Source of the DNA: Mytilus trossulus
Lineage: Eukaryota
Direction of reading: 5' to 3'
NCBI RefSeq assembly: GCF_036588685.1
Contig: NC_086379.1
Location: 58,652,001-58,716,000 of the forward strand
Length of the DNA stretch: 64,000 nt
Positions within the stretch are counted from its first letter, which is position 1. Each line of letters starts with the position of its first letter. The position numbers were made by a program, and so were the translations under genes. Below the pieces are notes generated by a model. It was given only the letters and a program-made list of their open reading frames with translations, was not told the origin of the DNA and searched no databases. This document shows, piece after piece, positions 5,856 through 62,703 of this stretch.

Positions 5856-6280
5856 CTAGTGTTTATAAACACATCACTTTCCAAATTGCTTCTTACTTTT
5901 TCTGCCACATCAATATTTACTTCATTTGGAGAAAGCCTATATTTTCTGCAATAGTCTACCACTTCCTGTGTTGAAAACGAGAAATCTAAACTGTTCTGTA
6001 TACATGCAGTATACTCTTTCTCTTTATCATTCAATGGTTTAAACATTCCGATATTACTATATACACTGTCCAGCAACTCAGACAGGGGTATGGACTGGTC
6101 ACAGTAAATAATGCCTATACATTGAAGACATGTGATATCCCATTGCGATGTACTTGAGGGTAATACCCCTTTGCATTTGACTTTATATTGGGAGTCTTCG
6201 TCGTCATCCTCTGAGTCCGATTTACGTTGTAATTTTAATATTTTGCGAACGCGTTTTCGTATTTTCCGCTGCTCAGCCAT
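5856..6280 (-). CDS. First coding exon of an uncharacterised minus-strand gene, possibly a pseudogene
   Basis: ATG at 6280 (MAEQRKIRKRVRK...SSTSQWDITCLQCIGIIY), open frame ending at a canonical ag|gtgagt donor at 5855. Downstream exons look disrupted. Confidence 0.5.
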
Positions 6281-6389
6281 AACGGAAGTAAACAAACATT
6301 GCATAAAAGAGAATCAAGCTCGGAACGGAACTACACGCAAACACGGATTAGAATTGAGATCTCTAGGTAAAGTGACATACATTTCTTTT

Positions 6390-7582
6390 GTTAAAGTCAC
6401 TGAAGGCGTTACCAATATGTTCCCTTCCTCAGTTGGAGTAAAACAAGGCTGCATTCTAAGTCCTACCTTATTTTCTTTTTATATAAATGATTTAACCTCA
6501 ATGTTTGATAACACATGTGATCCTGTAACATTACATGACATAAAATTGTCTAGTCTTTTATATGCTGATGACTTAGTATTAATTTCAGAATCCTCAGAAG
6601 GTTTACAAAATTGTCTAAACAAGTTAAATACTTATTGTGAAAAATGGAACTTGACTGTCAATCTTGACAAGACAAAAACAATGATATTTAATAAAAGTGG
6701 TAAAAAACTTACAAAAGACCAGTTTGTATTGAATAATGAATTAATTGAATGTTGCACAGAATATAAATATTTAGGTATACTATTCAAGCCATCAGGAATT
6801 TTCACTAATGCTGTAAATCTCCTATGTAAAAAAGCTTCTAAGGCATTGTTTTGTATTAAAAAAAATACTCTACTCAGATAAGATGGATGTTTCTTCCCAT
6901 ATGAAACTATTTAATTCTTGTGTTAGTCCAATATTACTGTATTGTAGTGAGATATGGTCGCTAAATATTGTGAAGAACAACAAAACTCTTGAATCTCAAT
7001 ATTTATCTATGGAATCAGTAAAACTCCAAATCAAATTTGCGAAAGGTCTTCTAAATGTTAATTCAAAGGCAGTAAATACAGCTGTATTAGCTGAATTGGG
7101 AATGTACCCTATTGGTATACAGGCCCTTAAGTCTTCTATAGGATTTTGGTTACATATTTTAAAGTCAAATGAAAATGAGTCTTTATTATATAATGTTTAT
7201 AAAGCTAACAAGCAGTTAAATGATGGATTTGCTTCAAAAGTTAAAATGCTACTTTCAAAATTAAATTTCACTCATGTTTGGGAAAATCAATGTACCTTCT
7301 CTAAAAAACGATTACTATTAGCCGTCGTGAAGAAGCTCAATGAAAATTACATTATATTTTGGAAAAATTGTCTCTTTAATGATGAAAATTCAATAAATGG
7401 AAATAAACTAAGAACCTACAGAAAATTTAAAGTTAAGTATGAACTAGAAAAGTACCTTTTATTGAATTTAGATAAAAATGTTACAAAAAATTATGCTAAA
7501 ATAAGAATAAGTAATAGTATGTTGGCTGTTGAACGTGGAAGATACAACAAAACAGCTCTAGAAAATAGAATATGTCCTTTAT
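6390..7582 (+). mobile_element. 5'-truncated LINE (RTE-X-like), 5' portion; reverse transcriptase and C-terminal region, interrupted at 7582
   Basis: GVKQGCILSPTLF and LLYADD RT motifs; YCSEIW; AVERGRY...RICPL. One frameshift in an A-run near 6860. The frame continues at 52554. Confidence 0.9.
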
Positions 7583-7678
7583 CAGTCCAGGCGATTATTT
7601 ATCCAAGTAATATAACGCATATCAGTAATATTACATGCAAAAATAATGTGGCTTATATTACAGTTATTTGTAATATAG
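7583..7678 (+). repeat. Left TIR plus subterminal GTAATATWAC boxes of the giant element
   Basis: CAGTCCAGGCGATTATT at 7583-7599; GTAATATAAC at 7607-7616; GTAATATTAC at 7625-7634; partial boxes at 7654 and 7670. Confidence 0.9.
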
Positions 7679-8149
7679 TTGATTAGAAAGCGTTATCTCC
7701 CTTTACTCATAGTCAAGTTTGAAATCTTAATGTAGCACTCTCTGTATAATAGATTTTGATACATTGATATACACACATTTTCAAATTAAGAAAAGGCATA
7801 TGACCACATATAATGGTAAATTAAAAATCAGAAACAAATTAAAAACAATAAAAAGCCTCAAAACAACAAACGCATAAGCAAACTTATTTTGGCTTAATGT
7901 TTAAGTTGATTTACAATTCAGTCAGCCATGGACCAACGGACGCGACATATCAGAAAACGGGAGCGATGAGAGATTGGTTTTTAATTAGATTGGTCATGGA
8001 CACATATCATTATATACATGTACAACTTTCATGATTTTTATCTTTCAAAATTTGAAAATATTTTTTTTCGATAAAATGTCATAACAATGCGCGAAGATGT
8101 TCTTGATTAAAATTTATACATGAATTAATAAAACATCTTAAATAAAAAT

Positions 8150-10450: not shown

Positions 10451-11653
10451 ATCTCAACGATCAGCATGCCAGATATTTCTGTTACTGAAAATTTTCAAAA
10501 AATAAAACTGAACAAGCATATTGTAAAACGAAGGACGTAACAAATAAAAATAATTCTTTATAAATTATACAGATCTGAATCGCAATTTTGGTCTCTTCAA
10601 TTTACTTTAATTTCACCAGGAACACCACGTAAACTTGCAAATCGGATGACAAATAAACAACAAATTTCTATTGTGAGATCGATATGATTTAGTATTACCA
10701 TATCAACAGTCCAGCATCTATGCCCGAGAAAACACATCAAAATGATGTTGGGCTTATCATCTGCATCACTTAGAAAATACCTTAAAACAAATTAAACTGT
10801 CATTTCAATTAAAATTTGCAAGTTGACAGAAACCACATGTTTTGTTAACCTGATTTTGAAGTGATAATTGTTGGCCAAATGTATTAATAGTAAATACACA
10901 TCAATGATTCTTAATTGTGTCCTTTTTAATAAATTATGTGTTAAGTTTATTTACAAAAAAGGTATAATTTGAATTTTGAAGCTGAAATAGAAAATAAAGT
11001 CATTTAACAGAGAAATTAACAACCACTTTCATGTTTGAAATATTTTTTATATCTTTAATGTACATGCAAATTATAACCAACATGAACAAACAATAAAATT
11101 GAATTATTATACATAATCTAATAAAAATATATCATATATATATGGCATAAAAAGTTAACAATGATAAACCATATTTTTCTTTGAATAAAAACAAGGTGAA
11201 AATGAAAAATTGAATGATTGCATAATTTAATGTGCTTATTGTCCAGCAACACATATTACATTCATATTAAGTATAAAAACATCATTTACAATGTAAATGA
11301 ACAATTGAAATAAATACCCAACTAATACTAAAAATGTTTTCAAAGATTTAGGAATACCCTATTGCTGACAAAAATGCAAATTTTTAAATTGTAATAATAT
11401 TGATAATTCTATGTAAAGGCAAAACATAAGATCTTGCATTTTAACTTGTTGTTTTAGTTTAATTCTTCTATGTAGATCCACTTAATCCAAAAAAAAGTTT
11501 TGATACCTGTAACAATTATCCTATAAGTATATAATGACAATTTGAAGTAAATAAACAATATAGCTTTATCATTATGCAAATGAACACATATAATTGGAAC
11601 CTTTCAGGAAAGGTCCATTCTTCATCTATACAAAGAGCATTCAAAGCAACTGA

Positions 11654-13100
11654 CTACTTGGATTTAACAGGCGTAGATGTGGTCATTCTTTTTTTTCTTC
11701 TTCCTTTTTGTGGAGTGTCTTCCATACGCCTCTTTCGGCCAATTATTTCACTTACATTCCCTTTACTATCTGGACCAAAGTAATATTCTACTTCGTTGTC
11801 TTCGGTCTTTCGTAGACAGTCTTTTCCTAGGAAGTTTGGTAATAAATCCATAGGGTTTCCAGCAGTAGACAGATACTCAATTTGCAGGTTGATTATATCT
11901 GCAATCCTTTCAATTGCTGACTCCGGTTGCAACCACAACTGTCCGCTCCTCAAAGACTTGCTGTATACGGGGTCAGTGTTCTGGTTTTGGTGTTTACTAA
12001 TCATAGTTGCTTTTCGCACATCATCAAAGGAATTCTCTCTGAATTCATGGTTTTTGGACAATATAACTTCTTCATAAACATCTTATAGGTTGGAGTATCA
12101 ATTTGGTAGATGTTTCTGTTACCCTTTTGAAGTAATTTTGTTCGGAAGAAATCATTATTAAGGAACAAATTAAGCATTTTCATAAAATTTAGGAATAAAA
12201 TCATTCCCACCCATGCAGAGTACAATACATATATGAATAGAAATTTTCTTTGCAATGTCAACATCTTCAAAATGGCTGTGAAAGAATTCTATTAAAGACA
12301 TTATATTGTAAACATCAATCTTTTTGTTTGGTTTCTGTAATACGACAAATACTGGGTGGCTATATTTCCCTTGTGCAAAGGGCCAGTTGTCTGAAAGTGC
12401 AAACATATGAATCGGAATGGCATCTATATCTCCTGATGTAACGATGCTACATGCTGCTTTTGACGGAGAAAGCTATGCTTTGCACATACACAACCAGTCA
12501 ACTTGAGACATTTCAGCTTCACCTTTTCTTTGGTGTATGTCATTTAGATCTTGTATAATTGGCTTAGGACACGTTTTCTTGAATGAACATTGTATTGGTA
12601 TAGTATAGTTCTGACATATGCATTCTACACTATGTTCACATGGAACAACCTTCATATTCAATTCACTGTCAATAAAATAAAATCAGCCCCTATTTCAAGT
12701 TGATTCGCATTAGCAGCCAAATAAGTACTCATGATGGTCTTTCCTTCTCTGGTAGTCACAATATCTTCTTTTCGAAATTGATTCTGGTTTATCATCTCAT
12801 GGGATGTTCTCAGATGAGCAATGGTTGCTTTTGTTTTTTTAAAGTTCTCTGTTGGTGTGTAGCTGCCTTGAAGGTATCTGGTGTAAAGGAATATTTTTCC
12901 TCACAAAGTATAAGTCTTTCTGCTGTTGGGAATTGTCGAAGGATTGGTTTTATAACTGCATTTTGAACATACTTTATATACTGTATGCCTGAGGTAACCT
13001 TCGTTTTAAATTTAACACCAGCATGTACATATATCCATTTATCTGGTTATTTCTGTACTTGAGTGGTTATCAAAAATTTACACGCTTAGCTTTTGTTTTA
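11654..13100 (-). pseudogene. Decayed XPG/FEN1 (PIN-like) 5' nuclease gene, AcademX-type
   Basis: Motifs in the expected order across frameshifts and stops: RLILCEEKY...K...R, KGEAEM (~12509-12526), SIVTSGDID (~12422-12448), VLCMGGNDF helix-turn-helix motif (~12197-12225); basic NLS-like C-terminus. Confidence 0.75.
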
Positions 13101-13334
13101 AACATCTGTTTTGAAGCAATATTATCTGTCCCTAATCAGTTGTTGATGACAGATTTATGTATCTACTTAACCATTTTATAATTGAGAGAAGATATGAAAT
13201 TTACCCTGTGTAGGGCTTAGTTTGAAGACTGTCAAAGGATTCATGGTTATATGACAAGGCTTTCTAACTAACTATACCGATATGTTACTACCTCGTTACT
13301 ACACAGTGTTTCGCTCTTTGTTGAAGGCTTTATG

Positions 13335-34944: not shown

Positions 34945-37900
34945 ATGGCAATGGAAAGACAAGAATTTGATCGTCAAAGGTAAGTTTTTAAGTTCCTGAC
35001 ACAGACCTTATGATATATTTTTTTTATACCTGAAAACCTTTAAAGTGAAATAAACTTGATACTAGTAAACAAAAGTATATATTCAAATAAATAAATAGAT
35101 AACTCAAGATGTATAAAATCCCCATTTTGATACCGCTATTTTGAGAAAAAAATCAATCTTCAAAATGAATTTGATGTGGCCTGAGTGCTGATTTCCAGAT
35201 TTTGTACTGAAAATAGTTTAAACTGTTAAACCCTGCATATCACAAAGACTGAAGAAATATGATACTACAGCTTTTATGGAGTTTTGAATTCGAAGTCCAA
35301 ACGCATTATCAACATGATCAATCTATCAAAACATGTAAAAATAATCTTTCATATGTTTATCTGTTGACATCCATGTTACGGAAATAATTATTATTTGGCA
35401 AAATGAGAGCAAATTTGATTTATTAAAAACAACATTATTTGAATAAACCCCATCTTGAAAGAATTGAAGAATATGTTTTCAAAATAGAGTCATAAAATAG
35501 CACTTATTATATAAATATATATCTTTAATCGAAAACTGTAATCAATCTATGAAGAAGAAATGCGCTGATAACATGCTGATTATTAAAATGGTGTAATTAT
35601 TGTTATCTGTGAAAAGAATAGTTACTGACACAATATAAATAGATAATGGAATTAAGTCAAAACACAAACAAATTAAATAAATTTTCAAAGAGTATAATTG
35701 TCTGTAAATTAACACTGTTAGACCGACGTATGTTATCTGTTCATGCATTTGGAAATTTTATTACAAATTCACGTGCCGTTGTAGTGACATGATTTATTAT
35801 ATATAAGTCATCAGAAGGTTAATCCAACATGGCATACATACACTTCATAAAGGTGGTTATAGTTTTTTTGTGTCCTAGTTGCAACACTAGTCTATTTTTA
35901 GAGTTCGAGTATAGGTAGATAGCAACAAAAATGAACTATAAACATATAAAAATGCATCAAATATTACAACCAATAGGGCTACACCATAGAACATTACCAA
36001 GGAAAAAATATTTATTGAGACAAGTTTAAGTATCGCATAAAATATATAAATATACAAGGACGAGGATGTGTCTTTAGAGGGCTTATGAATTGCCATAATC
36101 CTGAGACGGCTTCAATAAACAGGCTTTTATAGTACAATCTGCCATTTTTATAAAAACAGTTTAAAAAAGAATAACACTTTTAATTTCCTATTTTTAACGG
36201 AAAATACATATCAAACTTTATATATTAAATGAAAGTTGAAATACTACTTATAAAGATGTAAAAACACAATTGACTTCATTTTATCTTTGACTTCGGCATT
36301 ATCGGTTTGACGAATTATAATATCCGTTACTTAGAGTGCATTTCTTTCTAACACAAACGATGCAAACGGCTAAGCGCGCACATGTTTTGATTATTTGTTG
36401 ATCAAGTTTGACAAACTATGCACCCGCTTAACATCTACTACAGTTTGTCTTTCATCGTTTGTTTGTAAAAACGCTACCTTTGTTACTAACTTCAACCTTG
36501 AATTTCAGTAAGATTATAAGAGAACATCGGAACAATCTGCAAAAAGACAAACAATGCAATGAAATATTCGCCCTAGTGCCTATCATATCGTATAAACGTA
36601 ACACAAATATGACGTTTACAAAATTTAGGTTAGACAGAAATGCACTCTTAATCAGCATGAGATGACAGATTGACAGCTCCACTTTACCATGTTAACTATT
36701 TAATAATTGAGAAAAAATTTAAACTATTCACTTAAAACAGATTGAGATGAAGTACTATAAATCCTTAATCACAAACTATAAAACTTTAAATCATCATATA
36801 AATCTTAAAAATCCAATCGTGACAACGAAATATAAAATAAAATATCTAGAACAGGGACTTTCTTACGGAAACGCATTTGTGACATGCATAGACTTATGAA
36901 TAGACTTATTAAGAAGGGATATAATTACGATACTGTTGTCAAGTCATTAAATATTGCATATTTTTGCGTTAATATTGAGTCACGGATAAGGTCTTTGCGT
37001 CGGAACTAAACACATTTATTCTAAAAACAGTTGTTGGCATGACACGGGTTATGTTTTTCTCATATATGTTATGATGGTATGATACTAAACCCCTAACGGG
37101 AAGGATTGTGCCTGATGTTCATATGATGAAATCATAATCTTTCAGTCAGTTTAATTGAAGTCTGGAGCTTGCATGTCAGTTAATTGTTTAGGGGACAGCT
37201 GAAGGACGCTTCCTGGTGCGGGAATTTCTCGCTACATTGAAGACCTGTTGGTGACCTTCTGCTGTTGTTTTTTTTATTTGGTCGGGTTGTTGTCTCTTTG
37301 ACACATTCCCCTTTTCCATTCTCAATTTTAGTATAATGATAACGCAAGACAAACGATACAATATACAATACTAATAAAATAAAAAAACATGAAGAATAAT
37401 GTTGAACTATATCATAATGCCACTGGATCTTATTCCAGAATTGAAGTGGAGAAACACATCATATTGTTGAAAACCATTTGCAGAATATGCGGAACACGTG
37501 ACCTACACAGACCAACTTTTGACAAATGCGCTTTCACACCTGAAATAAAGGAAGTATTTGATGTAGACATCAAAGAAGATCAGAAGGAAATTCATCCCAC
37601 GGCTTTATGTCGTTCTCATGAAATGTTACTTTTGAAATGCAGGAAATTAAAAGCAGAAGGCCGCTTGAATGAATTTAAAACTCGGGTAAATCCTGTATGT
37701 TTTAAACCTCATAATGATGACTGCAAAATTTGTAATATCAAAAGAGGGAAAAAACGAAAAATAAACAATTTACAGCCGGAAGAAGACAAAAGAAAGAGGG
37801 TGATTCTGCCTAGTAATGAACACCGGGAAAGAGAATCAAGTCCAGAGGGTTTGACGGAATCAAATGCTTCTTCAGGGAACTCATTAGAATTTCCAAGAAC

Positions 37901-40900
37901 AATTAACACTAAAAATATGCTCGACATATTCAAAAAAATGTCGAAAACCGGACGGTCATCTTTCTTAGATCAACTTCTCCCTCTTTTAACACAAAATGAG
38001 ATTGCGTCTTTAGCAATAAACCTCGGATCAAAACAAGCAAAACTTCTAAAAGCAGACGCTGAACTTATGTCTCAAGATTCCCTGGAAAAGACCAAAATAA
38101 TAGATTTCAATCCAGATGAATGGCTTTCAAAGCGAAACAATGTATTGCTTAACTTCCTAAAAGGAATCACACTGTTCGATCCTAACAGATCGACCGAACC
38201 ACAGAAAATAACGCTATGTCGTGCTGTAGAACACGTTTATGGTTTAATATCGCAGAAATTGGTAGCACCACTTTCCTTTCTTTTGTCTCTGAATATATAT
38301 GCAAGAACGAGCAGCCGGTCTGTTATTGACTTAATCGCAAAATCATCGCCCAGTGGATGCTATAAAACATTACAGAAATGGATATCGAATGCAGGAAACG
38401 AAGTCCAGCCATGTCCACAAAGACCGTTAATGTTCGGTTTCGATAATGAACAAATTATAGGCTACAAGAGAGGTATAAGTGCGGAAAATCGCTCTAGGTC
38501 ATCTATCATAACCACTCAAGTACATGTTATAATGAAAAGTTCAGCTGATAATTTAGATATCCAATATTTAGAAAATCTAAAACCGAAAAATTATTTTTCA
38601 ATAAATCATTTTGAAGACAAAATTAAGCACGCAGAACGTTTCGATCTTCAAGAAAAGCAGCGAGTAGCTGAGGTTGAAAAACAAGAATTTAAAAAAATTG
38701 TGAGCAACATTCAAGACAACGATTCTGATTACTACCAAGAACTCGAATCGATTCACTTGGAACATCTTCAACACTACATTCAGACTGCCATTGATGCAGT
38801 TATTACAGATCGTATGACATCGCGATCATCAACAGACGATTTTGAGGATGAAATTGACAAACAGGATTTCCATGAAAGTAGGAAAAAGGATATCCTCATT
38901 TGCACTTTATGTGGGAGCGAAAATGCCAGGAAAAAATTAATATGTGAAGGATGCAAGAAAAAAAAAGGTATAAAGGAAGCAAGAAAAAATAGCAATTCGC
39001 AAACAACAGCAAAGCCTAAGAAAAAAGAAAAGCCTGTGTTGACAGAAGAGCTAAATTCTAATTCCACAGAGAGAAAAGAAAACACAGCAAATTATTCAAG
39101 ATTTTCATATGTATCCACCAACCATAAAGGGCCTACTGCAGTAAGCATGGGAATGCCTACATTTCAGAACCCAAATAGCAGTGAGTCTGTCGCAATGATA
39201 CTAAGACACATTGGAATGCAAGCTGGCATTAAGCGATACGGTAAAGATAATGATAGAGACTGGACTTTCGTCTGCTGTGACGGAAGACCACATAGTCTCT
39301 TCCAGAAGATATTGAATGAAGCTGTTATCTGTACACATTGCATTAATAACAAGGCGTGTTCAGATAAAGCCTCTTTTACATCAAAAGAAGAGTACACGCA
39401 ACACCACAAACGCCAACATTCCGATTTACAAAGTGCGTATCAAAAGGAATTCGACTGGCTTTATCTTAGAATAGGCGGGGGTCATTTTGAAATGAATGCT
39501 GTCAAGGCCTTTTTTGAGTTGAACTGGATACCATATCTTGAAAAGATGTGCGAGCTCATGGGATTTAACAGCCCAAATGCGAAGAACTTTGCTAAAACAT
39601 GTAAGGATCATCATGTAGCATGGCAACTTCTTCTTACATTTCACACTTCTGCTATGCGCGAAATGGTTGTACCATTTATTAAGCATATAGAAAAAAACCA
39701 AGGAGATTCCTCAGCAGCTAACTTTATATCTTTTTATAAAACAGTATTGTCTCATATTCCTAGACATCAATATTTACATTTACAAGTATGCAGATTTTCG
39801 CAGGCATTGATAAATTTACGTATGGGAATGAGGCGCAATAATGCCAAGCTAGTCGCTAGTGCAAAATTTCACTTAAAAGAATTGTTCTACGGTCGACATC
39901 ACCCACATTACCAGAGCATTGAACTTTTTGACACCGTTCAGTACAATACAATGCCAAATGTGGTGAAAACTATTTGGGATAACAACATATCTTTTACGGT
40001 GAGTGGAGACAGCTCAAAAGGACAAGATTTGGATTTTCTGCTAGAAGAAAAAAACAAAAATGTGAAACAATATCTGCCGTCAGGATCAATTCCGTCCGAC
40101 GAGACATGGAAGGCAATATGTTGCAATCTAAATTTTTTGAAAAATTAGAAAGTAAAGTTTCTATTCTCCTTGGGTTAAAAAATCCTACTGAATTTGGTAC
40201 GAAAGAACTTGACATTGATAACGCCATTAACAGTTTTAGACCTGTATTACGGAGGTACATTTCATCAAATGAGAAAAGCTTTGTCTCACTTAAAGGACTA
40301 GAACTACATCCAGATTTGTTACAATTTTTACCAATTTCTACTGGAAAACGTTTGCAAAAAATTAAATCGGAGATTTTATGCCAACCCATAGAGATTGTTA
40401 ACAATGAACCCGTATATGTTACAATAAATGAAGAAACCGATTATCAACACAAGCTTTCAAAGGAAAGATTAAGCATGAAAATACAGAAACTTATCGACCA
40501 ATTATCATCAGATGAACTTTTGCAGAGGCATTATCAAACTATTTTGGATTCCTTAAAAAGTCCCCTAATCAAACGTGATGTCTATGTAACACTTTATTTT
40601 GAATTGAAAGACGTGGTAAGCAGCACAACATCAGTGTTCGTGGAGTAGATGGGAACGAGAACTATGATTTCATATATTATACATCATACATGGCTAGGTA
40701 AAATAAGTACAATAATAGCTTAACTGTTAAAAAAACCCGTAGTTATGCTTATTGTGATGTTTGTGTGTATAACTTATTACAGAATTTACTAGAAAATTCT
40801 AGTGAATTTTGTTATAAGTTTAACACATAAACATATTTTTTCGTCAACAAAAACGGAAAATGTCTATTGGTGATATAAACAAGTGTTATTTCGATTTTGA

Positions 40901-43900
40901 AATTTATATATACACTGATGATTAAGGCCGAATAAAATATCATGTATTTCTAAAGTCACTAAAACTACAAATCAACATTAAAAGATAATACTTATTTATT
41001 TTTGTTTAACGATAGAAAAATTTGATATAAAGATAATTATCAACAAAATCAATTGCACATAAAACAATAGATATGTAAAATCATACGACGATTAGCGCGG
41101 TGAAATTATCAGTTTTCTCCTGGTAAATGTACTTTCTTTTTCAAATCCCAATTCAGACACAAACCTCAGTAGCTGTACCAACATTCAAAACACATGATCG
41201 TCCCTCTGCTCATTGTTATACATTAAAGTTTTTAAATGTTGTTTTTAATAACGTGAAAAGAGCTAAAGAGTAAAAAAGGATACATAGAATAAACGATCGC
41301 TCATCATTTTGCTCATAAAAAGTATATGTTATACGATTAAAAACTTAAGACTAACGAAAAAATGTAACGTTTTATAATTAAAAAAAAATAAATAATGTTC
41401 TATTTTTTCGATGACTATATATGTGCTATGGTCTTAATATGATTTTTTTAACATATAGCAAAAAACAAATCCATCTATACCACTGTACACGCTGTGGATA
41501 TAATTTTGTTTACACAATTCTAAAGAAATGTTATTGATTACAAGAATGTTCAATCTGACGAATAAAAACATGCGTTTAAAATAATTAACCTACTTTTTGA
41601 CATATATGTATAATCTTTATCAAACGATACTCACTTATATATATATACGATCTGTAGTAATTTATATATGCATGGTCTTTATTAATTATTTATAAAATCT
41701 TTTTGTATTTCTAAATTAGGTATGATTCAGAGAATGATCCTTCTGAGGATGAATTTAACATTGATGATGTTGAATCGTCTACTCCAAGAAAACCTAGAAA
41801 ACCCGGCGAAAGAAAAACTTATGATACGCTGCAGAAAAAGAAAACATCAGAAATATCCAATGAAAGAAGAAAAAAATCGACTGCTTTGCGTGGTATAAAA
41901 CAACAATTTAAAAGACTTAAAGAATTGAAACACCTAAATGTGACTTTTGCGTTCGTGTGCTTCGATTTGACACAACAACGTCAAACTATTAAGAGAGATG
42001 GGAAAGGAGCCTATTATGATAATTTGCTCAATGGTAGACCTATTGTGGATAAAAGGGACATACAAAGAAAAAAACAGAGGGATGGGTTGACGGAAACGTA
42101 TTTCCCTCATGAGGAAAATTTAAGAGAAACCCAGTTCATAACACCTACAAAGTTGTCGTGTGGTCCAGGAGTGTCCCGAAATATTGCCAGAGAGCAGATG
42201 GAGACACTGCAAGATGTAAACATTCAGCCAGGTCATGAGAATGACTCTTACTCACATGGTATGATTACTGTCATAGTATAACGTTATGCTGTTTATATTA
42301 CTACTCTAAATTATTGCTTTCATTTTTTTTAATACACGATCTATTTTTAGAAAGTGTTGCTTCATGGAATTGTGTTTAATCAGGTATTAATGAATTCCAT
42401 AAACATTTGATTTTAAGAAACGTATATACCTTCATTATCGTTTGCAAGAATTTTGCTTACTTCGCCATGTTCACATATTACAGACGGAAACCTTTCATTT
42501 GACAATTATTAAGATAAGAACTCAAAACAGTATAATCAATTGCAGGACGTCCGATGGTATTACATGTATTACATGACAAGCAAATATAGAGAATCAGTTA
42601 TTTTTGTATCTGCATATATAATATACCATATGACAACATGTACTAATATGGATGTATTGATTAACAATTTTATCTTAGATAAGCTGAAATAATCTGAATA
42701 TTTCCATTTTTTTTTTACTCATAGATGTAGCAACTCCACAAAGGAAGGTCACAAGAAAGAGAATTAGGACCGTAAAAAGTAAACGTACGAACATTATTGT
42801 TGCAGTAGCTGATGATGATAGTGACAATAATGATGTTGATGTGAATAACGATTCAGCTGTTGATGCTGTTGCTTTTGATGCTTCGAAAAATAATAATGAA
42901 AATGAAGATGGAGATATCGACGACGTTGACGACGGCGCCGATGATGACGACGACGATGAGGATGATGATGATGATGATAATAATAGCGATGAGGATGATG
43001 ATGATGATAATCATAGCGATGAAGATGATGATGATGATAATCATAGCGATGAGGATGATGATAATGATAGCGATGATGATGACAATAAGGATGACGACGG
43101 TGACGACGACGACACCAATGATGATGATGATGATTTAGCTGCTACTACTGATGATTTTAAATTTGACGACGACGATGACGACAGCACTGATAACGTGAAT
43201 TTACCACGACTTTACAGAGTAAGTTATCTTAATTTGAATTTTTGAAATACTAAGGCTTTTCTATCTCAGAAATATATGACCTTAGCTTTATTTGGGAAAA
43301 CTTTTAGGTATCTTGGTCCTTAAACTCGTACTTTATTTGGCCTTTCTGATTTTAAACCACCGAAGATAAATTCATAGTAGTAAAAATAATGTATAGTGGA
43401 AAAACTATTGCATATTATTATATTTTTTTTTCAATAACAAAACTATATTATAACAATACATTGAAATGATTTGATCTATTACAAAAATATCTTTTTCATA
43501 CATTTTTGGACATACTTCATATACACATGCATTCGATGCGGTGACCAATTTAAAGAATAAAAGTAAAGAGAACTGGAACAAGAAAACAATACGTCACTTC
43601 GTATTATGAACCTAAATAGTTTGCCAATACAAATTAAACAAACAAAATTAAGTTAATATAACAAGTCGTTTTTACCAGAAATTTCACAGACTTGAAAAGG
43701 CATATGCATGCTAGTGGTACCTACAAAACATAGACAAGAATTGAGCATACTTCTCCATTATTATTGCAGAATAACTTATCTAATGTGAAAAATACAGATC
43801 TATCGAAAAGAGGTAAGTCTTTTAATTACAATAAATGTGCGTCCCTGAGAGAGGTATCTGAATCATTTATCTAATTTTGTCTTAAGAGAAAAGGTATGGT

Positions 43901-52399: not shown

Positions 52400-52548
52400 T
52401 AGCAAAACTATATTACATCTTTTCGTAATATTGATTATTACGTCTTTTTGTAATATAGACGTTATATTACATAAAGCTGTAATATTACTTTATTATGTTA
52501 TATTATAGGTTTAAGTAATATTACTCTTTACAATAATCGCCTGGACTG
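52400..52548 (-). repeat. Right TIR plus subterminal GTAATATWAC array of the giant element
   Basis: AATAATCGCCTGGACTG at 52532-52548; boxes at 52515-52524, 52497-52506, 52479-52488 and 52461-52470 (18-bp period). Confidence 0.9.
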
Positions 52549-53080
52549 TTTATGCCATAAAGAGTTGGAAGATGAATTTCATTTCATCATTACATGTTCA
52601 GAAATTAATAAAACTAGGATCAAAATGTTTAATGAAATTTCTAATATTGTCCCCTGTTTTAATTCCATGAGTGAAGAAAATAAATTTGATTTTATATTTT
52701 CCTGCGAAGAATGTGATATTTTACTTATCATTGTTAACTACATAAGTGAAATGTATAATGAGAGAAACAATTATAATGTCAATATATGAACTGTGTAATG
52801 TATATTATAACATATTTTTTGATACATGAGCATAATATTTTAATACATAACTTTAAAGAGGAGGCATGCTGTCAAAACTAGTATTATAATTAATACTATT
52901 GATCTATGTTTTTGTTTTTCTTTCAATGCTACATGTTTGTAGTGTAACTGTTTATTGACTATCGTTTTGTAATTTTAATATGCCTGTTTGTTTGTTGTTT
53001 TTGTTGTGTATTTTAGTAACAATCCTATTGTTTGGATTTCAAACTAATAAAATTCTTATTCTTATTCTTATTCTTATTCT
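52549..53080 (+). mobile_element. 3' portion of the interrupted RTE-X-like LINE
   Basis: CHKELEDEFHFIITC... to stop at 52789; 3' UTR; AATAAA at 53046 followed by a (TTCTTA)n tail. Confidence 0.9.
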
Positions 53081-53821: not shown

Positions 53822-55810
53822 ATAGACAATAGACAATAGACAATATTTTATTCGCACAAACACATTTACATTAAATGGTTATGGCATACAAAATTAAGAC
53901 AATAAACGTACAATAGTTAAATTGATTACAATTATATTAGAGTGACAGTGGTATTCACAGCAAAGAAGAAAAAAGGCTATAAATATCAACAGTTAACACA
54001 TTATTAATGTTCATGAACAATTGAAAAAAGAACACAAACAAAAATTAGGTTGGCATTGCATATTAAAAGAAATACAAGTTATACAGATGTTCTTAATAAA
54101 AGACAATCATTAATATACTTTATGGTGATTTTTATAATGACTGGTAGACTGCTATTTAAAAGTACAGTCAAATGCTTAAGTGTTATAGTGGACTGCAATT
54201 TAATAAAATTGAAATTAAGATTTTTATTAATATTTTGTATATAGGTATCCCTTAATGATGAATAACATGGACAGATTGAGAAGAAATGGTATTCATCCTC
54301 AATTTCTTGTCTGTTACAGGATAAGCAAATGCGTTTACTTCTTTCAATGTTGGTATAACGCCCTCTTTCAATTGCTAGGGAATGTGCACTTAGTTTAAAT
54401 TTACTGAAAACTGATCGGTCAGTTTTGAATTTACATATATCAATATATGGGGGCCTTTTCCTAATTATTTTAGTATGACAAAAGAAATTTAATTTTTCAC
54501 ATTTATTGATAGAACAATTTATAATTTGATAAGCCTGGTCATAGATTCTTTGTTGGATACTATTTATGTGATATTTTAAATTAAAAGTATCAAAAGTGAG
54601 ATGACCAAAACCTAATTTATTTAACCAGTCTTTTACAATGTTAACCCATTTACTTGTTTTCTCTACATTATTATATATTTTATGGACTAAAGTGTTAGGC
54701 GAGTTTACAATATGGTTTAGAAATTTTATAGCTGAAAGCTGAATTTTAAAGTACAAAGGGATTCTGTTTGTCTCAGTTAAACAGGCTACATTTGTTGTTT
54801 TGCACTGTACACCTAAAATTTCTTTAATAAATTTAATATGTAAATGTTCAAATGGATCTGAATCTTTGAACACTTGGCTTACACCCCAAACTTCACTCCC
54901 ATAAAGAGTTATTGGAACAACTAAAGTATCAAATAATTTTTCAAGCATACTGCAGGAATTATCTAAAGAGACTGTTTTTTTAATTTTAAACCAAGCCTTT
55001 CTCCCTTTTTCCATAAGATTTTTTTTTGAATGACTTAAACTTCCTGAACAATTTATAGTTATTCCAAGGTAACAAATAGATTTAACAGTCTCAAGATGTT
55101 CTTTTTCTACTTTAAAATAATTACAGTGAGATTTTCCATTAGAATTGAATATTATAATTTTTGATTTTTGTTTGTTAACATCAAGTTTCCATAGGGAACA
55201 AAATTTAGCTAACTCATTTAGTGCATTTTGTAGCCCTTCTTCAACTTCGGGGGTTTCAGATAATAAAATAATGTCATCTGCATATAATAATGATGTTAAT
55301 TTAACATCTCCTATAATAATTGGTTGAGTGTTTGCATGATCAAGGTCATTTACAAGGCCATTTATATAAATATTAAACAAAGTGGGGCTAAGTACATCCC
55401 CTTGTTTTACTCCATAATTTGATATAAATTCATGGCTCATACCATTTTGAAATTTAATTCTGCATTTGTTGTCATTATACATTGATTGGATGACATTAAA
55501 AAGCTTGCCTGGAAGTCTGTTTTGGAGTAGAATGTAGAATAAACCCTCCCTCCAGACAGTATCAAAGGCTTTTCGCAGATCTATAAATGCTGCAAAAACT
55601 TTCTTTTTTTTAGTTTTATATTTGTCTACAATAGACTTTAATGAGAAGATATGATCTGCTGTTCTAGCTTTTTCTTTGAAGCCAATCTGATTTTCACTTA
55701 TCAAATTATTAGTGTTAATAAACTTCATTAGTCTAGTGTGTATAATTTTATTGAATAATTTTCCCAAATTAGAAGTCAATGAGATACCTCTATAATAAGA
55801 GGGGTCAGAT
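53822..55810 (-). mobile_element. 5'-truncated RTE-X-like LINE with open RT ORF (54079-55779)
   Basis: NQIGF, FIDLRKAFD, GVKQGDVLSPTLF, LLYADD and IERGRY...RICLSC...EDEYHF motifs; AATAAA plus (TTGTCTA)n tail at 53822-53852. Confidence 0.92.
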
Positions 55811-55811
55811 T

Positions 55812-55992
55812 TATATTCGTGATAGTTGACTTAAGTTGTATTTGTATTATAATTTAAAAAAAATAGTTTTATAGTCTCTCATAACTCTTTATAGAGTGGC
55901 TCTTGTTGTTAATTTGTGTTTTAAAAAGCTGTATATTTTATATGTGACAAGTGGTGAGACTTTAATAAAGTATTTGTCTTGTCTTGTCTTGT
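55812..55992 (+). repeat. Probable 3' end of another LINE
   Basis: AATAAA at ~55964 followed by a (TCTTG)n tail. Confidence 0.45.
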
Positions 55993-60500: not shown

Positions 60501-61530
60501 TTTTATTCATATCTACAGATCAATATATCGGAAACATACAATGTTGTCTTTAGAACTTAATGTGCGATTACAAAATGCTGTAACATATGAGACTTGTTTA
60601 TGTAATAACCCTGTTCATGTACGTTAAAAAATAAGGCGAAATGTTGCTGGTAGCCACTCGTCAGCAAAAAGTATTTAAGAGCATTAGAACAAAAATGTCC
60701 TTAACGGAACATTCACAATCGTCTTATTTAATGTATAGATAAGATTTGTTTTTAAAAAAAATCATACGGCATTTCAAATAGTAAAAAAAAATAATATCTT
60801 GAACCTTAAAACGCATTTTACAAATACATATAATCCGTTGGATGTCTGATATGAACAGATTGAAAACTTAGTCTTTGATGAATGTTTTTGTGTATTATAG
60901 TTATAATTGGATTTGAACTATCTGTCAATAACTGCGAGTACCCTAAGATCTATATTAAGTGTCTTTTTGTTGTAGGGATGAACAGTACCCGGCCACGTCC
61001 ACTCTATGCTTTTGTCTTATGTATTTATATTTGTATCCATCTGATGAGTTAAGGCTTTTTCAGCTTATTTTTATAGTTTGCTCTTATGTCGTACTGTTAC
61101 ACCACTGTCTTAAGTTAGGGGAGGTTACGGACCTCGTTAAAATGTTTAGCCTCGCCACATTCTGTATGTATGTGCTTGTCCCAAGTCAGAAGCCTGTAAT
61201 TCGGTGGTTCAGTGTTGTTTGTTGCTGTGTTATATATTTGTTTTTCGTTTTTTTTTGTTTGTTTTTCTCGTTTCAATCGTTTTACATTTGTGATATCGGG
61301 GACTTATAAAGCTGACTGCGGTATGGGATTTGCTCATTTCTGAAAGCCTTTCGATGACCTATAGCTGTTAATTTCTGTCTTATTTGGTCTCTTGTTGAGA
61401 GTCGTGCCATTGGCATTCATATCACATCTTCTTTTTTGGAATACACTCGTAAACGGGCGATCATTAAATAAATTATTCTTATAATATTAAATATTTAATA
61501 ATAATTATACATGTTTTTATATTGATAGCA

Positions 61531-62703
61531 ATGGATAGAACTGAACCTTTAAAGTTTCGTCTCAAACACAGGAAATCAATTGATCAAGCCCAAACAAATA
61601 CCTCATACAAATGTGGGGAGTGCGGATTTAACTTCGGTGCAAAAAAAGATTTGCAAAAACATTTATCTAAACATAGGGAGGAAAATTCATTAATTCTAGA
61701 AAGCTCCTTACCAAAACTAAGTAATTGTGGAGCAAAAGTGTACGAATGTGATATATGCGACAGGATATTCAGCGAAAAAGTTTACCTTAAATTACATACC
61801 AGAATACATAAAGGATTCAAGCCATACAAATGTCCAGATTGTGATGGGAGATATAACGATTGCATCGAATTACAAAATCATCGTAAGTTGCATACTTATA
61901 TTGAAAAAACTAAGACATCAACCAAACCTTTAAAAGAAAAGAAAACATCAACCTCAAAAGAAATAAAACTTAAATCAACCAATGACAATGAGATGATGTA
62001 CAAATGTAAATGTGGAAGACGATATTCAAACTTGGTAAAATATAAGTCCCATGTACTATCTCATAAGGACAATCCTACAGACTTAAAGTGCTATCTTTGT
62101 GAAGCTACTTTCAGCAGAAGACGAGCTTTACAACTGCATTTGAACGAACATGCTAAAGAAGACCATACAGAGGTGTACAAATGTGATAAATGTGACCAGA
62201 GATACTTTTCTAAATGGTGGTTTGATAAGCATAATTGTTCATATGTAGAAAGTAAATGCCCAGAATGTGGAAAAACGTTTAAAGATAAGTTTCGTTTGAG
62301 AAATCATATGATTTTTCACTCAAACAAGAAGCCGTTTCTTTGTCAAGTTTGTAAGAAGAGTTTCCACTTGAAGCATCAATTAATAGTGCACGAACGGATA
62401 CATACTGGAGAACGTCCATTGTCATGTAACTTGTGTGGTAAAAGTTTCAATCAGCTAAACGTGTTAAAACGACATGTCCTTAACATACATACAAATCATA
62501 GATCTAAGAAATGCCCCCTCTGCGACAAAGGGTTCAATAGTGCTGATCAGTTAAAGAGTCATATGATAGTCCACAATCCTGAACCAGTTTTATGTTCATT
62601 TTGTGGGAAATGCTTTAAAGCTGTAGTGCATTTGAAAAATCATGTAAAGAGATGTAGACTTAATCCAAAACAAAACACGAGTCTAATCACTTTAGGAGAA
62701 TAG
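61531..62703 (+). CDS. C2H2 zinc-finger protein (~11 fingers, ~390 aa)
   Basis: Tandem CxxC...HxxxH motifs with HTGERP/HKGFKPY linkers; ATG at 61531 follows an acceptor-like ttgatag, so an upstream exon is possible. Confidence 0.92.
   Translation: MDRTEPLKFRLKHRKSIDQAQTNTSYKCGECGFNFGAKKDLQKHLSKHREENSLILESSLPKLSNCGAKVYECDICDRIFSEKVYLKLHTRIHKGFKPYKCPDCDGRYNDCIELQNHRKLHTYIEKTKTSTKPLKEKKTSTSKEIKLKSTNDNEMMYKCKCGRRYSNLVKYKSHVLSHKDNPTDLKCYLCEATFSRRRALQLHLNEHAKEDHTEVYKCDKCDQRYFSKWWFDKHNCSYVESKCPECGKTFKDKFRLRNHMIFHSNKKPFLCQVCKKSFHLKHQLIVHERIHTGERPLSCNLCGKSFNQLNVLKRHVLNIHTNHRSKKCPLCDKGFNSADQLKSHMIVHNPEPVLCSFCGKCFKAVVHLKNHVKRCRLNPKQNTSLITLGE

Follow-up and report, generated by a model that had tools for sequence, protein, structure and literature searches.

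Chapaev transposons have been described as 'the only lineage' outside RAG1 and the RAG1-like proteins (RAG1L) that keeps the N-terminal zinc domain of RAG1 (NZD, or Chapa domain) (10.64898/2026.01.24.700457), and one view holds that the fusion of this domain with a catalytic core was already present in the common ancestor of Chapaev and Transib (PMC4411706). Chapaev elements are characterized by target site duplications (TSDs) of 3-4 bp, 'invariable' 5'-CAC...GTG-3' termini, and C(2)C, LH and H(4)H motifs, and Chapaev3 elements by TWA TSDs and a transposase of about 556 amino acids (aa) (PMC4079192). Academ transposons are among the most abundant DDE superfamilies of bivalves and, within molluscs, are nearly confined to them; the curated bivalve Academ elements have a mean length of 5.6 kb (PMC10294476). 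AcademH elements combine a transposase gene with an SF2 helicase, and TSDs measure 3-4 bp in AcademX and 9-10 bp in AcademH (PMC10045372). Here, we analyzed a 64-kb window of AT-rich animal DNA, the stretch from position 58,652,001 to 58,716,000 of contig NC_086379.1 of the mussel Mytilus trossulus, and a transposase gene within it. We consider it likely that the window holds one copy, with a single frameshift, of a giant cut-and-paste transposon whose transposase carries an NZD on a DDE core related to DUF6589/Academ. This reading is built on the domain identities, fold, conserved residues, terminal inverted repeats (TIRs), TSDs and several young copies that we establish here. It supports an initial annotation of the sequence, which had proposed a transposase of another class with a recruited RAG1 module: the NZD was confirmed, and the core proved to be DUF6589-related.

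The transposase is encoded by two overlapping open reading frames (ORFs) on the plus strand (Table 1). The initial annotation had pointed out the span 37389-40648 together with a series of short motifs, all of which were found at the places given for them. The two ORFs are a single gene, because the C6 copy of the element (L003:2492-5746), which lies on a chromosome other than that of the window, runs through both as one uninterrupted frame of 1085 aa. The window and C6 ORFs are separated by 26 substitutions (12 synonymous and 14 nonsynonymous) and by a single 1-base length difference in a T-run near 40133. Further copies are also interrupted, the C8 copy by a premature stop after residue 1015 and the C10 copy by an internal deletion. 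The transposase ORF is 99.2-99.7% identical between copies, and the copies overall are about 98% identical. In addition, the genome contains several subfamilies of paralogs whose intact frames measure 990-1142 aa. The family thus has intact copies, which were apparently active in recent time.

The N-terminus of the window protein is a RAG1 NZD/Chapa zinc domain. Pfam PF12560 (RAG1_imp_bd) matched window residues 53-147 with an E-value of 3e-11 and 43.8 bits, and its scores ranged from 43.8 to 46.3 bits, above the curated cut-off of 23.3. The mouse RAG1 NZD (PDB 21WB) was matched at E 3.5e-4 using the single window protein and at E 5.6e-7 using the family profile. In the alignment of 28 relatives, the putative ligands H23, C31, C74, H108, C112 and C115 each occur in all sequences or in no fewer than 90% of them. 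The ligands follow the RAG1-like 'type I' arrangement of two interleaved zinc sites, with one N-terminal His and a C-terminal His-Cys-Cys, zinc binding being predicted. The same arrangement has been given for RAG1, RAG1L and some Chapa domains (preprint 10.64898/2026.01.24.700457).

We modeled residues 1-150 with AlphaFold2 (pLDDT 85). The model contains helices at residues 17-27, 46-57 and 75-89 that approximate H1, H3 and H4, and it is without the vertebrate H2. Its best Foldseek match was the ZAD domain of Pita, and the six best VIA-align matches were all ZAD domains, with Z-scores of 3.1-4.3 over residues 23-99. We note that this structural comparison is indirect, made via ZAD and with a structure library that does not include 21WB. 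The solved NZD itself has no solved homologue, and its first zinc module is locally similar to ZAD (10.64898/2026.01.24.700457). The profile matches (PF12560 and 21WB) and the ZAD-like model all agree with the initial proposal of an N-terminus resembling the RAG1 non-core region. That proposal had come with the suggestion that the fold of the N-terminus be predicted separately from the rest, and the N-terminus does match the RAG1-N/Chapa profile.

With the NZDs of RAG1 and RAG1-like proteins, the mussel domain shares the pattern H...CxxC...HPxxxC...H...CxxC, a second zinc site made of one N-terminal and three C-terminal ligands, the predicted helices H1, H3 and H4, the ZAD-like first module, and a basic stretch behind the domain. 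It differs from the RAG1 domain in lacking the vertebrate-specific helix H2, like invertebrate RAG1L. The mussel protein also differs from RAG1 in having no RING/zinc-dimerization domain after the NZD and a core unrelated in sequence to RAG1/Transib. The remark in the initial annotation that no RING finger follows was correct, as the Pfam search at E ≤ 1 found neither a RING family nor any other family in this region. The basic stretch that follows the NZD, which we read from the sequence, looks like a nuclear localization signal and falls within the PF12560 'importin binding' match.

The catalytic core was modeled over residues 300-960 (pLDDT 89, pTM 0.88) and compared to known structures in an exhaustive VIA-align search. 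The P element transposase scored highest, with Z 10.1 across 321 aligned residues. Retroviral integrase cores scored 7.6-8.7 over about 120-140 residues, Tn5 scored 8.3 over 208 residues and Hermes 8.3 over 294 residues, and RAG1 and BbRAGL scored 5.8-6.2 over about 340-350 residues. On the strength of these matches, the core is predicted to adopt a DDE fold of the RNase H-like type that accommodates a large helical insertion; the model is not specifically RAG1-like. Foldseek found no significant match for the core model in the PDB, and the core of the window protein had no significant match in Pfam. When the family sequence profiles were searched against the PDB, zinc fingers were the sole matches besides the NZD, and no RAG1 or Transib chain was recovered. 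The Pfam RAG1 core family PF12940 had zero matches in the genome-wide search. The missing RAG1/Transib profile matches, the absence of PF12940, and a Z-score for RAG1 (6.2) below that for the P element (10.1) all bear out the earlier view that the core is not of the RAG1/Transib type.

The P element and Hermes (hAT) transposases are the best overall structural matches, and share with the mussel protein an RNase H fold that is split by a large helical insertion before the catalytic Glu. They differ from it in several respects: there is no sequence similarity, the mussel protein has neither a THAP nor a BED domain, the TSD lengths are different, and the C/DxxH motif is missing from its usual site after the second Asp. 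In the comparison with Transib/RAG1, the 5-bp TSD length is the sole shared feature, and the PF12940 core and heptamer-like CACAGTG termini are both absent.

We assessed candidate catalytic residues by conservation and by superposition. Four residues (D631, D882, E886 and N889) are invariant in 48 relatives, and D352 and E701 are conserved in 90% or more of them. The first Asp of the integrases superposes on model residues 53-54, and the catalytic Glu of HIV-1, PFV, P element, Hermes and RAG1 in each case on model residue 583-587, where residue equivalences were counted inward from the ends of the superposed ranges. The probable catalytic triad of the modeled core is therefore D352, D631 and E886. 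The DDE core of the initial annotation was borne out, and as the third catalytic residue the superpositions favor E886 in DFLLEEKN over the Glu of GHFEMN.

The element occupies positions 7583-52548, about 45 kb. These ends lie far outside the span of the ORFs, the span given in the initial annotation. The left end was located using a palindromic box found near the right end, and boxes of the GTAATATTAC type are phased at 18 bp inside both ends, with the first box at offset 24 on each side. The element termini are CAG...CTG. In C8, TTTAA borders the copy at either end and the sequence context is another one, so that the two complete copies examined (window and C8) each have a TSD of 5 bp. The 5-bp TSDs anticipated in the initial annotation were therefore recovered, as TTTAT in the window and TTTAA in C8. 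The terminal 17-mer has 15 exact sites in the genome, versus 1-2 for a control pattern. We identified four complete copies on four chromosomes, with lengths of 45.0, 33.1, 39.9 and 32.1 kb, along with several truncated or rearranged ones. About 12 kb of the window copy consists of later insertions that are absent in the C8 copy. Another 48 ORFs in the element, all 75 aa or longer, have no recognizable Pfam family, neither XPG nor helicase.

Two other placements of the ends were rejected. The inverted repeat at 37113/40663 is 75% complementary and the copies extend beyond it, and the boundaries at 35432 and 29084 correspond to insertions or shared duplications in other copies.

Table 1. Coordinates of the element ends, the transposase gene and the predicted functional sites within the window.
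Feature	Position	Strand	Remarks
Left TSD, TTTAT	7578-7582		Same 5 bases at 52549-52553
Left TIR, CAGTCCAGGCGATTATT, 17 bp	7583-7599	+	Recurs inverted at 52532-52548 without a mismatch
Left subterminal region with GTAATATWAC boxes	7600-7690	+	Boxes at 7607 and 7625, offsets 24 and 42 from the end
Transposase ORF, frame 1	37389-40148	+	919 aa; about residues 1-915 of the 1085-aa protein; contains the NZD, both zinc modules and D-D-E
RAG1-type NZD/Chapa	37455-37733	+	Residues 23-115; ligands H23, C31, C34, H69, C74, H77, H108, C112, C115
Basic stretch KRGKKRK...KRKR	37737-37805	+	About residues 117-139; read from the sequence; within the PF12560 match
D352 (FDNEQ), putative catalytic D1, strand beta1	38442-38444	+	At least 90% of 48 relatives; integrase superpositions
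CxxC...CxxC zinc ribbon (C505, C508, C519, C522)	38901-38954	+	Between D1 and D2; at least 90% conserved; weak zinc-ribbon matches
D631 (CCDG), putative catalytic D2	39279-39281	+	Invariant in 48 relatives; after strand beta4 in the model
C2H2 zinc finger (C648, C651, H672, H677)	39330-39419	+	Between D2 and strand beta5; profile matches PDB C2H2 fingers
E886 (DFLLEEKN), likeliest third catalytic residue	40044-40046	+	Invariant; superpositions
Transposase ORF, frame 2	40106-40648	+	180 aa; about 170 C-terminal residues; entered via the frameshift in the T-run near 40133
Right subterminal region with GTAATATTAC-type boxes	52440-52531	-	Boxes at 52515, 52479 and 52461, offsets 24, 60 and 78; 18-bp period
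Right TIR	52532-52548	-	Similarity of five copies stops at 52548-52553
Right TSD, TTTAT	52549-52553		Matches the left TSD

We searched the family profile against 1.84 billion representative proteins and retrieved 3624 relatives at E ≤ 1e-3. The DUF6589 family (PF20231) matched 23 out of 48 long relatives, with a best E-value of 2e-9 and some matches above the cut-off, at 37 bits. PF12560 matched 10 of the 48, and apart from DUF6589 no other family recurs. In the ESM-Atlas, the three best named clusters for the core were all DUF6589, mostly from Mollusca, and nothing usable was left once the DUF6589 clusters had been taken out. Second and third rounds of word-based homology searches added few extra proteins. 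In the search of the M. trossulus genome with the family profile, close relatives alone scored, and no direct link to the canonical DUF6589 loci was obtained. The core can be assigned to a large family, found in metazoans and distantly related to DUF6589. The relatives matching PF20231 and the Atlas clusters uphold the Academ/DUF6589-like character given to the core in the initial annotation, by way of DUF6589 as a proxy. We use 'Academ-like' in this proxy sense, and the family was set apart from curated Academ and Chapaev elements by Pfam match and published hallmarks rather than by comparison of core sequences.

We examined the relation between DUF6589 and Academ using profile searches of the genome, which yielded at least 103 matches to PF20231 and 150 matches to Helicase_C. 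A Helicase_C match lies at most 15 kb from 44 out of 78 distinct canonical DUF6589 loci, for a chance expectation of 0.3%. The paired helicase genes are usually 2-9 kb from the DUF6589 gene and on the opposite strand; divergent pairs are found, for example, at C12:49673922/49678115, C3:33062379/33059390 and C8:67540223/67545668. These pairs are an abundant AcademH-like population comprising dozens of loci. Because of the helicase pairing and the abundance of Academ in bivalves, we infer that DUF6589 would behave here as an Academ transposase domain. Three of the DUF6589 matches fall in open frames that are very long (1816, 1835 and 2171 aa).

The NZD profile detected 18 loci in the genome, all of them in open frames of about 400-1140 aa and most in frames of 900-1140 aa. 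None of the 18 has a Helicase_C match within 15 kb, and none has a PF20231 match within 15 kb at E ≤ 1e-3. The genome-wide Helicase_C matches include none inside the window, and the XPG_I profile matched four loci genome-wide, none of them inside the window. The NZD family thus forms a branch of its own, which is related to the Academ-type domain and has no helicase or XPG gene. What the mussel element would share with Academ is the DUF6589-related core, together with the occurrence in this genome of DUF6589 beside SF2 helicase genes, as in AcademH. It differs in having no helicase or XPG gene, a 5-bp TSD, and a length of 32-45 kb. A further difference is the NZD, which the mussel family has and the canonical DUF6589 loci of the same genome do not. 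Because the accessory-gene and TSD hallmarks fail, we classify the element as Academ/DUF6589-related and not as a member of Academ.

Several findings weigh against this assignment. The window protein itself has no PF20231 match at E ≤ 1, so that the link to DUF6589 runs via its relatives. No accessory gene of Academ is present in the element, and at 5 bp its TSD departs from those of both AcademX (3-4 bp) and AcademH (9-10 bp). The Z-scores of 8-10 obtained for the core count as moderate by the caution that accompanies VIA-align itself. In the model, E701 of GHFEMN, which is conserved and stands at the start of the insertion domain, may be an alternative third catalytic residue. Some of these points would also fit a core that forms a separate, unnamed DDE superfamily, in which the weak DUF6589 matches reflect a shared RNase H/insertion architecture and not Academ membership. 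The missing match in the window protein, relatives that score near or under the cut-off, the failure of PF20231 at E ≤ 1e-3 to recover any of the 18 NZD loci, and the combination of a unique 5-bp TSD, no helicase/XPG gene and giant size could all be read in this way. We nevertheless regard a separate superfamily as improbable, given that half of the relatives match PF20231, some of them above the cut-off at 37 bits, and that the Atlas yields nothing usable without the DUF6589 clusters. It is far less credible still that the ORF is a domesticated host gene within a segmental duplication rather than the transposase of a mobile element. In favor of a host gene are the great length and low copy number of the repeated unit, and the flanking duplications that some copies have in common. 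Against it stand the perfect TIRs, with 5-bp TSDs that differ between loci, on four chromosomes, and a 718-bp derivative with both ends. Copies with a frameshift, a premature stop or deletions, and the many paralogous subfamilies with intact ORFs in the genome, also argue for a mobile element.

The other reading that we weighed, and judge unlikely, is that the element is simply a diverged Chapaev of the CMC/CMCT clade, in which the Chapa domain is already known and nothing would have been newly recruited. The mussel element shares with Chapaev and Chapaev3 (CMC), among which we count the Aplysia elements and N-RAG-TP, an N-terminal NZD/Chapa domain on a DDE transposase, the 5'-CA...TG-3' termini present in most CMCT elements, and an occurrence in marine invertebrates, Chapaevs being known from molluscs and amphioxus. 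However, its TSD is 5 bp and not 3-4 bp, and its termini are CAG/CTG and not CAC/GTG. C648xxC651 and H672xxxxH677, which correspond to C(2)C and H(4)H, are present but just 20 residues apart, contiguous as in a classical C2H2 finger; there is no conserved LH. The core has no detectable sequence similarity to that of Transib/RAG1, and RAG1 is structurally a weaker match than the P element or the integrases. The mussel core is instead DUF6589-related, with DUF6589 as the sole recurring core family, and both protein and element are much larger (1085 aa versus 556 aa for the Chapaev3 transposase). We also inspected the published Chapa alignment. By this inspection, Chapaev-1/2_BF and Chapaev-1 to -3_ACa are clearly unlike the mussel and amphioxus NZDs of the present family, which keep the RAG1-like IHPT..C and PH...C.IC motifs.

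In the preferred reading of a transposon with an NZD on a DUF6589/Academ-related core, the transposase comprises a two-zinc NZD, a basic stretch, a helical region and a DDE domain with an RNase H fold. In this domain a zinc ribbon separates D1 from D2, D2 is followed by a C2H2 finger, and an all-helical insertion domain precedes the Glu. Such a protein would bind both the 17-bp TIRs and the GTAATATTAC boxes phased along the subterminal regions, excise the element at its CAG...CTG termini, and integrate it into AT-rich sites with a 5-bp stagger. A single transposase gene of 3.3 kb would then mobilize 32-45 kb, which is unusual among TIR transposons. The family also offers a test of NZD function in a transposase (end binding, nuclear import or regulation), which is hard to achieve in RAG1.

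Relatives of the core with a named source belong to Mytilus, Crassostrea, Owenia (an annelid), Branchiostoma and Lytechinus. The fusion of NZD and core is found in mussel, annelid and amphioxus, and the oyster and sea-urchin proteins share the core. The full pattern of NZD ligands was present in 21 out of 67 collected proteins of at least 800 aa, including proteins of Owenia and Branchiostoma. For the B. floridae protein P0194, the NZD was detected at E 1e-10, and hhalign aligned the core to the family profile at E 6e-143 over 828 columns. In amphioxus, the NZD-DUF6589 family occurs beside RAG1-like transposons. 'Sporadic' amphioxus proteins with NZD-like models have been reported that formed no coherent group (10.64898/2026.01.24.700457); the NZD-DUF6589 family may be the coherent group behind them.

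These results suggest that the NZD is shared by unrelated DDE cores of at least two types, Transib/RAG1-Chapaev and DUF6589/Academ, so that it can be seen as a module that moves between transposon lineages. A large and coherent family with the same domain on another DDE core favors module shuffling over single inheritance. We raise, as a tentative and rather doubtful extension, that the NZD is promiscuous and was joined independently to Transib/RAG1-like, Chapaev, DUF6589/Academ-like and Crypton-like enzymes, and that the present family is closer than Chapaev to the donor or recipient of the RAG1 N-terminus. The second part of this proposal follows from the RAG1-like IHPT..C and PH...C.IC motifs, which the family keeps and the aligned Chapaevs lack. 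The Crypton-like case refers to P0195, a gene model of 1314 aa from Branchiostoma floridae x japonicum. Its NZD-like N-terminus is 50% identical to that of P0026 and is fused to DUF3504, QRICH1 and phage-integrase-like domains, and its match to the family is limited to the N-terminal 117 residues. From its sequence, P0195 may be a Crypton-like tyrosine recombinase with an NZD or a chimeric gene prediction. If the protein is real, it would be a further sign of NZD shuffling among mobile elements, involving a fourth enzyme class.

The window copy contains a nested transposon of 2.5 kb at 10707-13231, with termini CAGTCCAGCATC... and ...GAAGACTG and a 4-bp TSD, TCAA; the C8 copy has the exact empty site. 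Two other copies of the nested transposon are 96-98% identical to it, and many short derivatives are built from its ends. Its first 8 bases are those of the giant element's terminus, and the nested transposon could have been moved by a related transposase. An XPG-like gene at 11654-13100 was considered as an Academ hallmark and rejected, as it sits inside this separate transposon. The XPG/FEN1 identity that the initial annotation had given to minus-strand exons found no support in Pfam, in the PDB or in the genome-wide XPG_I search.

Other features were observed within the copies of the giant element. A short interspersed repeat at 36897-37330 (about 290 + 150 bp) lies directly upstream of the transposase start codon in all copies of the element, and very many copies of this repeat, 90-98% identical, occur genome-wide. 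Downstream of the transposase gene, all copies retain two open frames (41715-42278 and 42688-43242) without a Pfam match; the second ends in an acidic D/E-rich repeat. A 718-bp unit at C3:78508740-78509457 is bounded by the terminal 17-mer and its inverted counterpart, one of which has a single mismatch, and is probably a miniature non-autonomous derivative. At C6:74894145-74917924, a 23.8-kb structure is bounded by two inverted left ends, both of which match bases 1-443, and is a rearranged or head-to-head copy. The segment 14000-27143 of the window recurs inverted at C8:68184465-68194557, about 46 kb upstream of the complete C8 copy. This inverted segment ends at a left TIR (C8:68194557) and represents a partial second copy or a local rearrangement. 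The copy at C6:75.19 Mb contains an N-run, which is an assembly gap.

Outside the element, the window contains RVT_1 reverse-transcriptase ORFs at 6132-7686 and 54079-55779. The reverse-transcriptase family at about 53822-55812 is present in dozens of copies that are 97-99% identical. A C2H2 zinc-finger ORF is located at 61522-62703.

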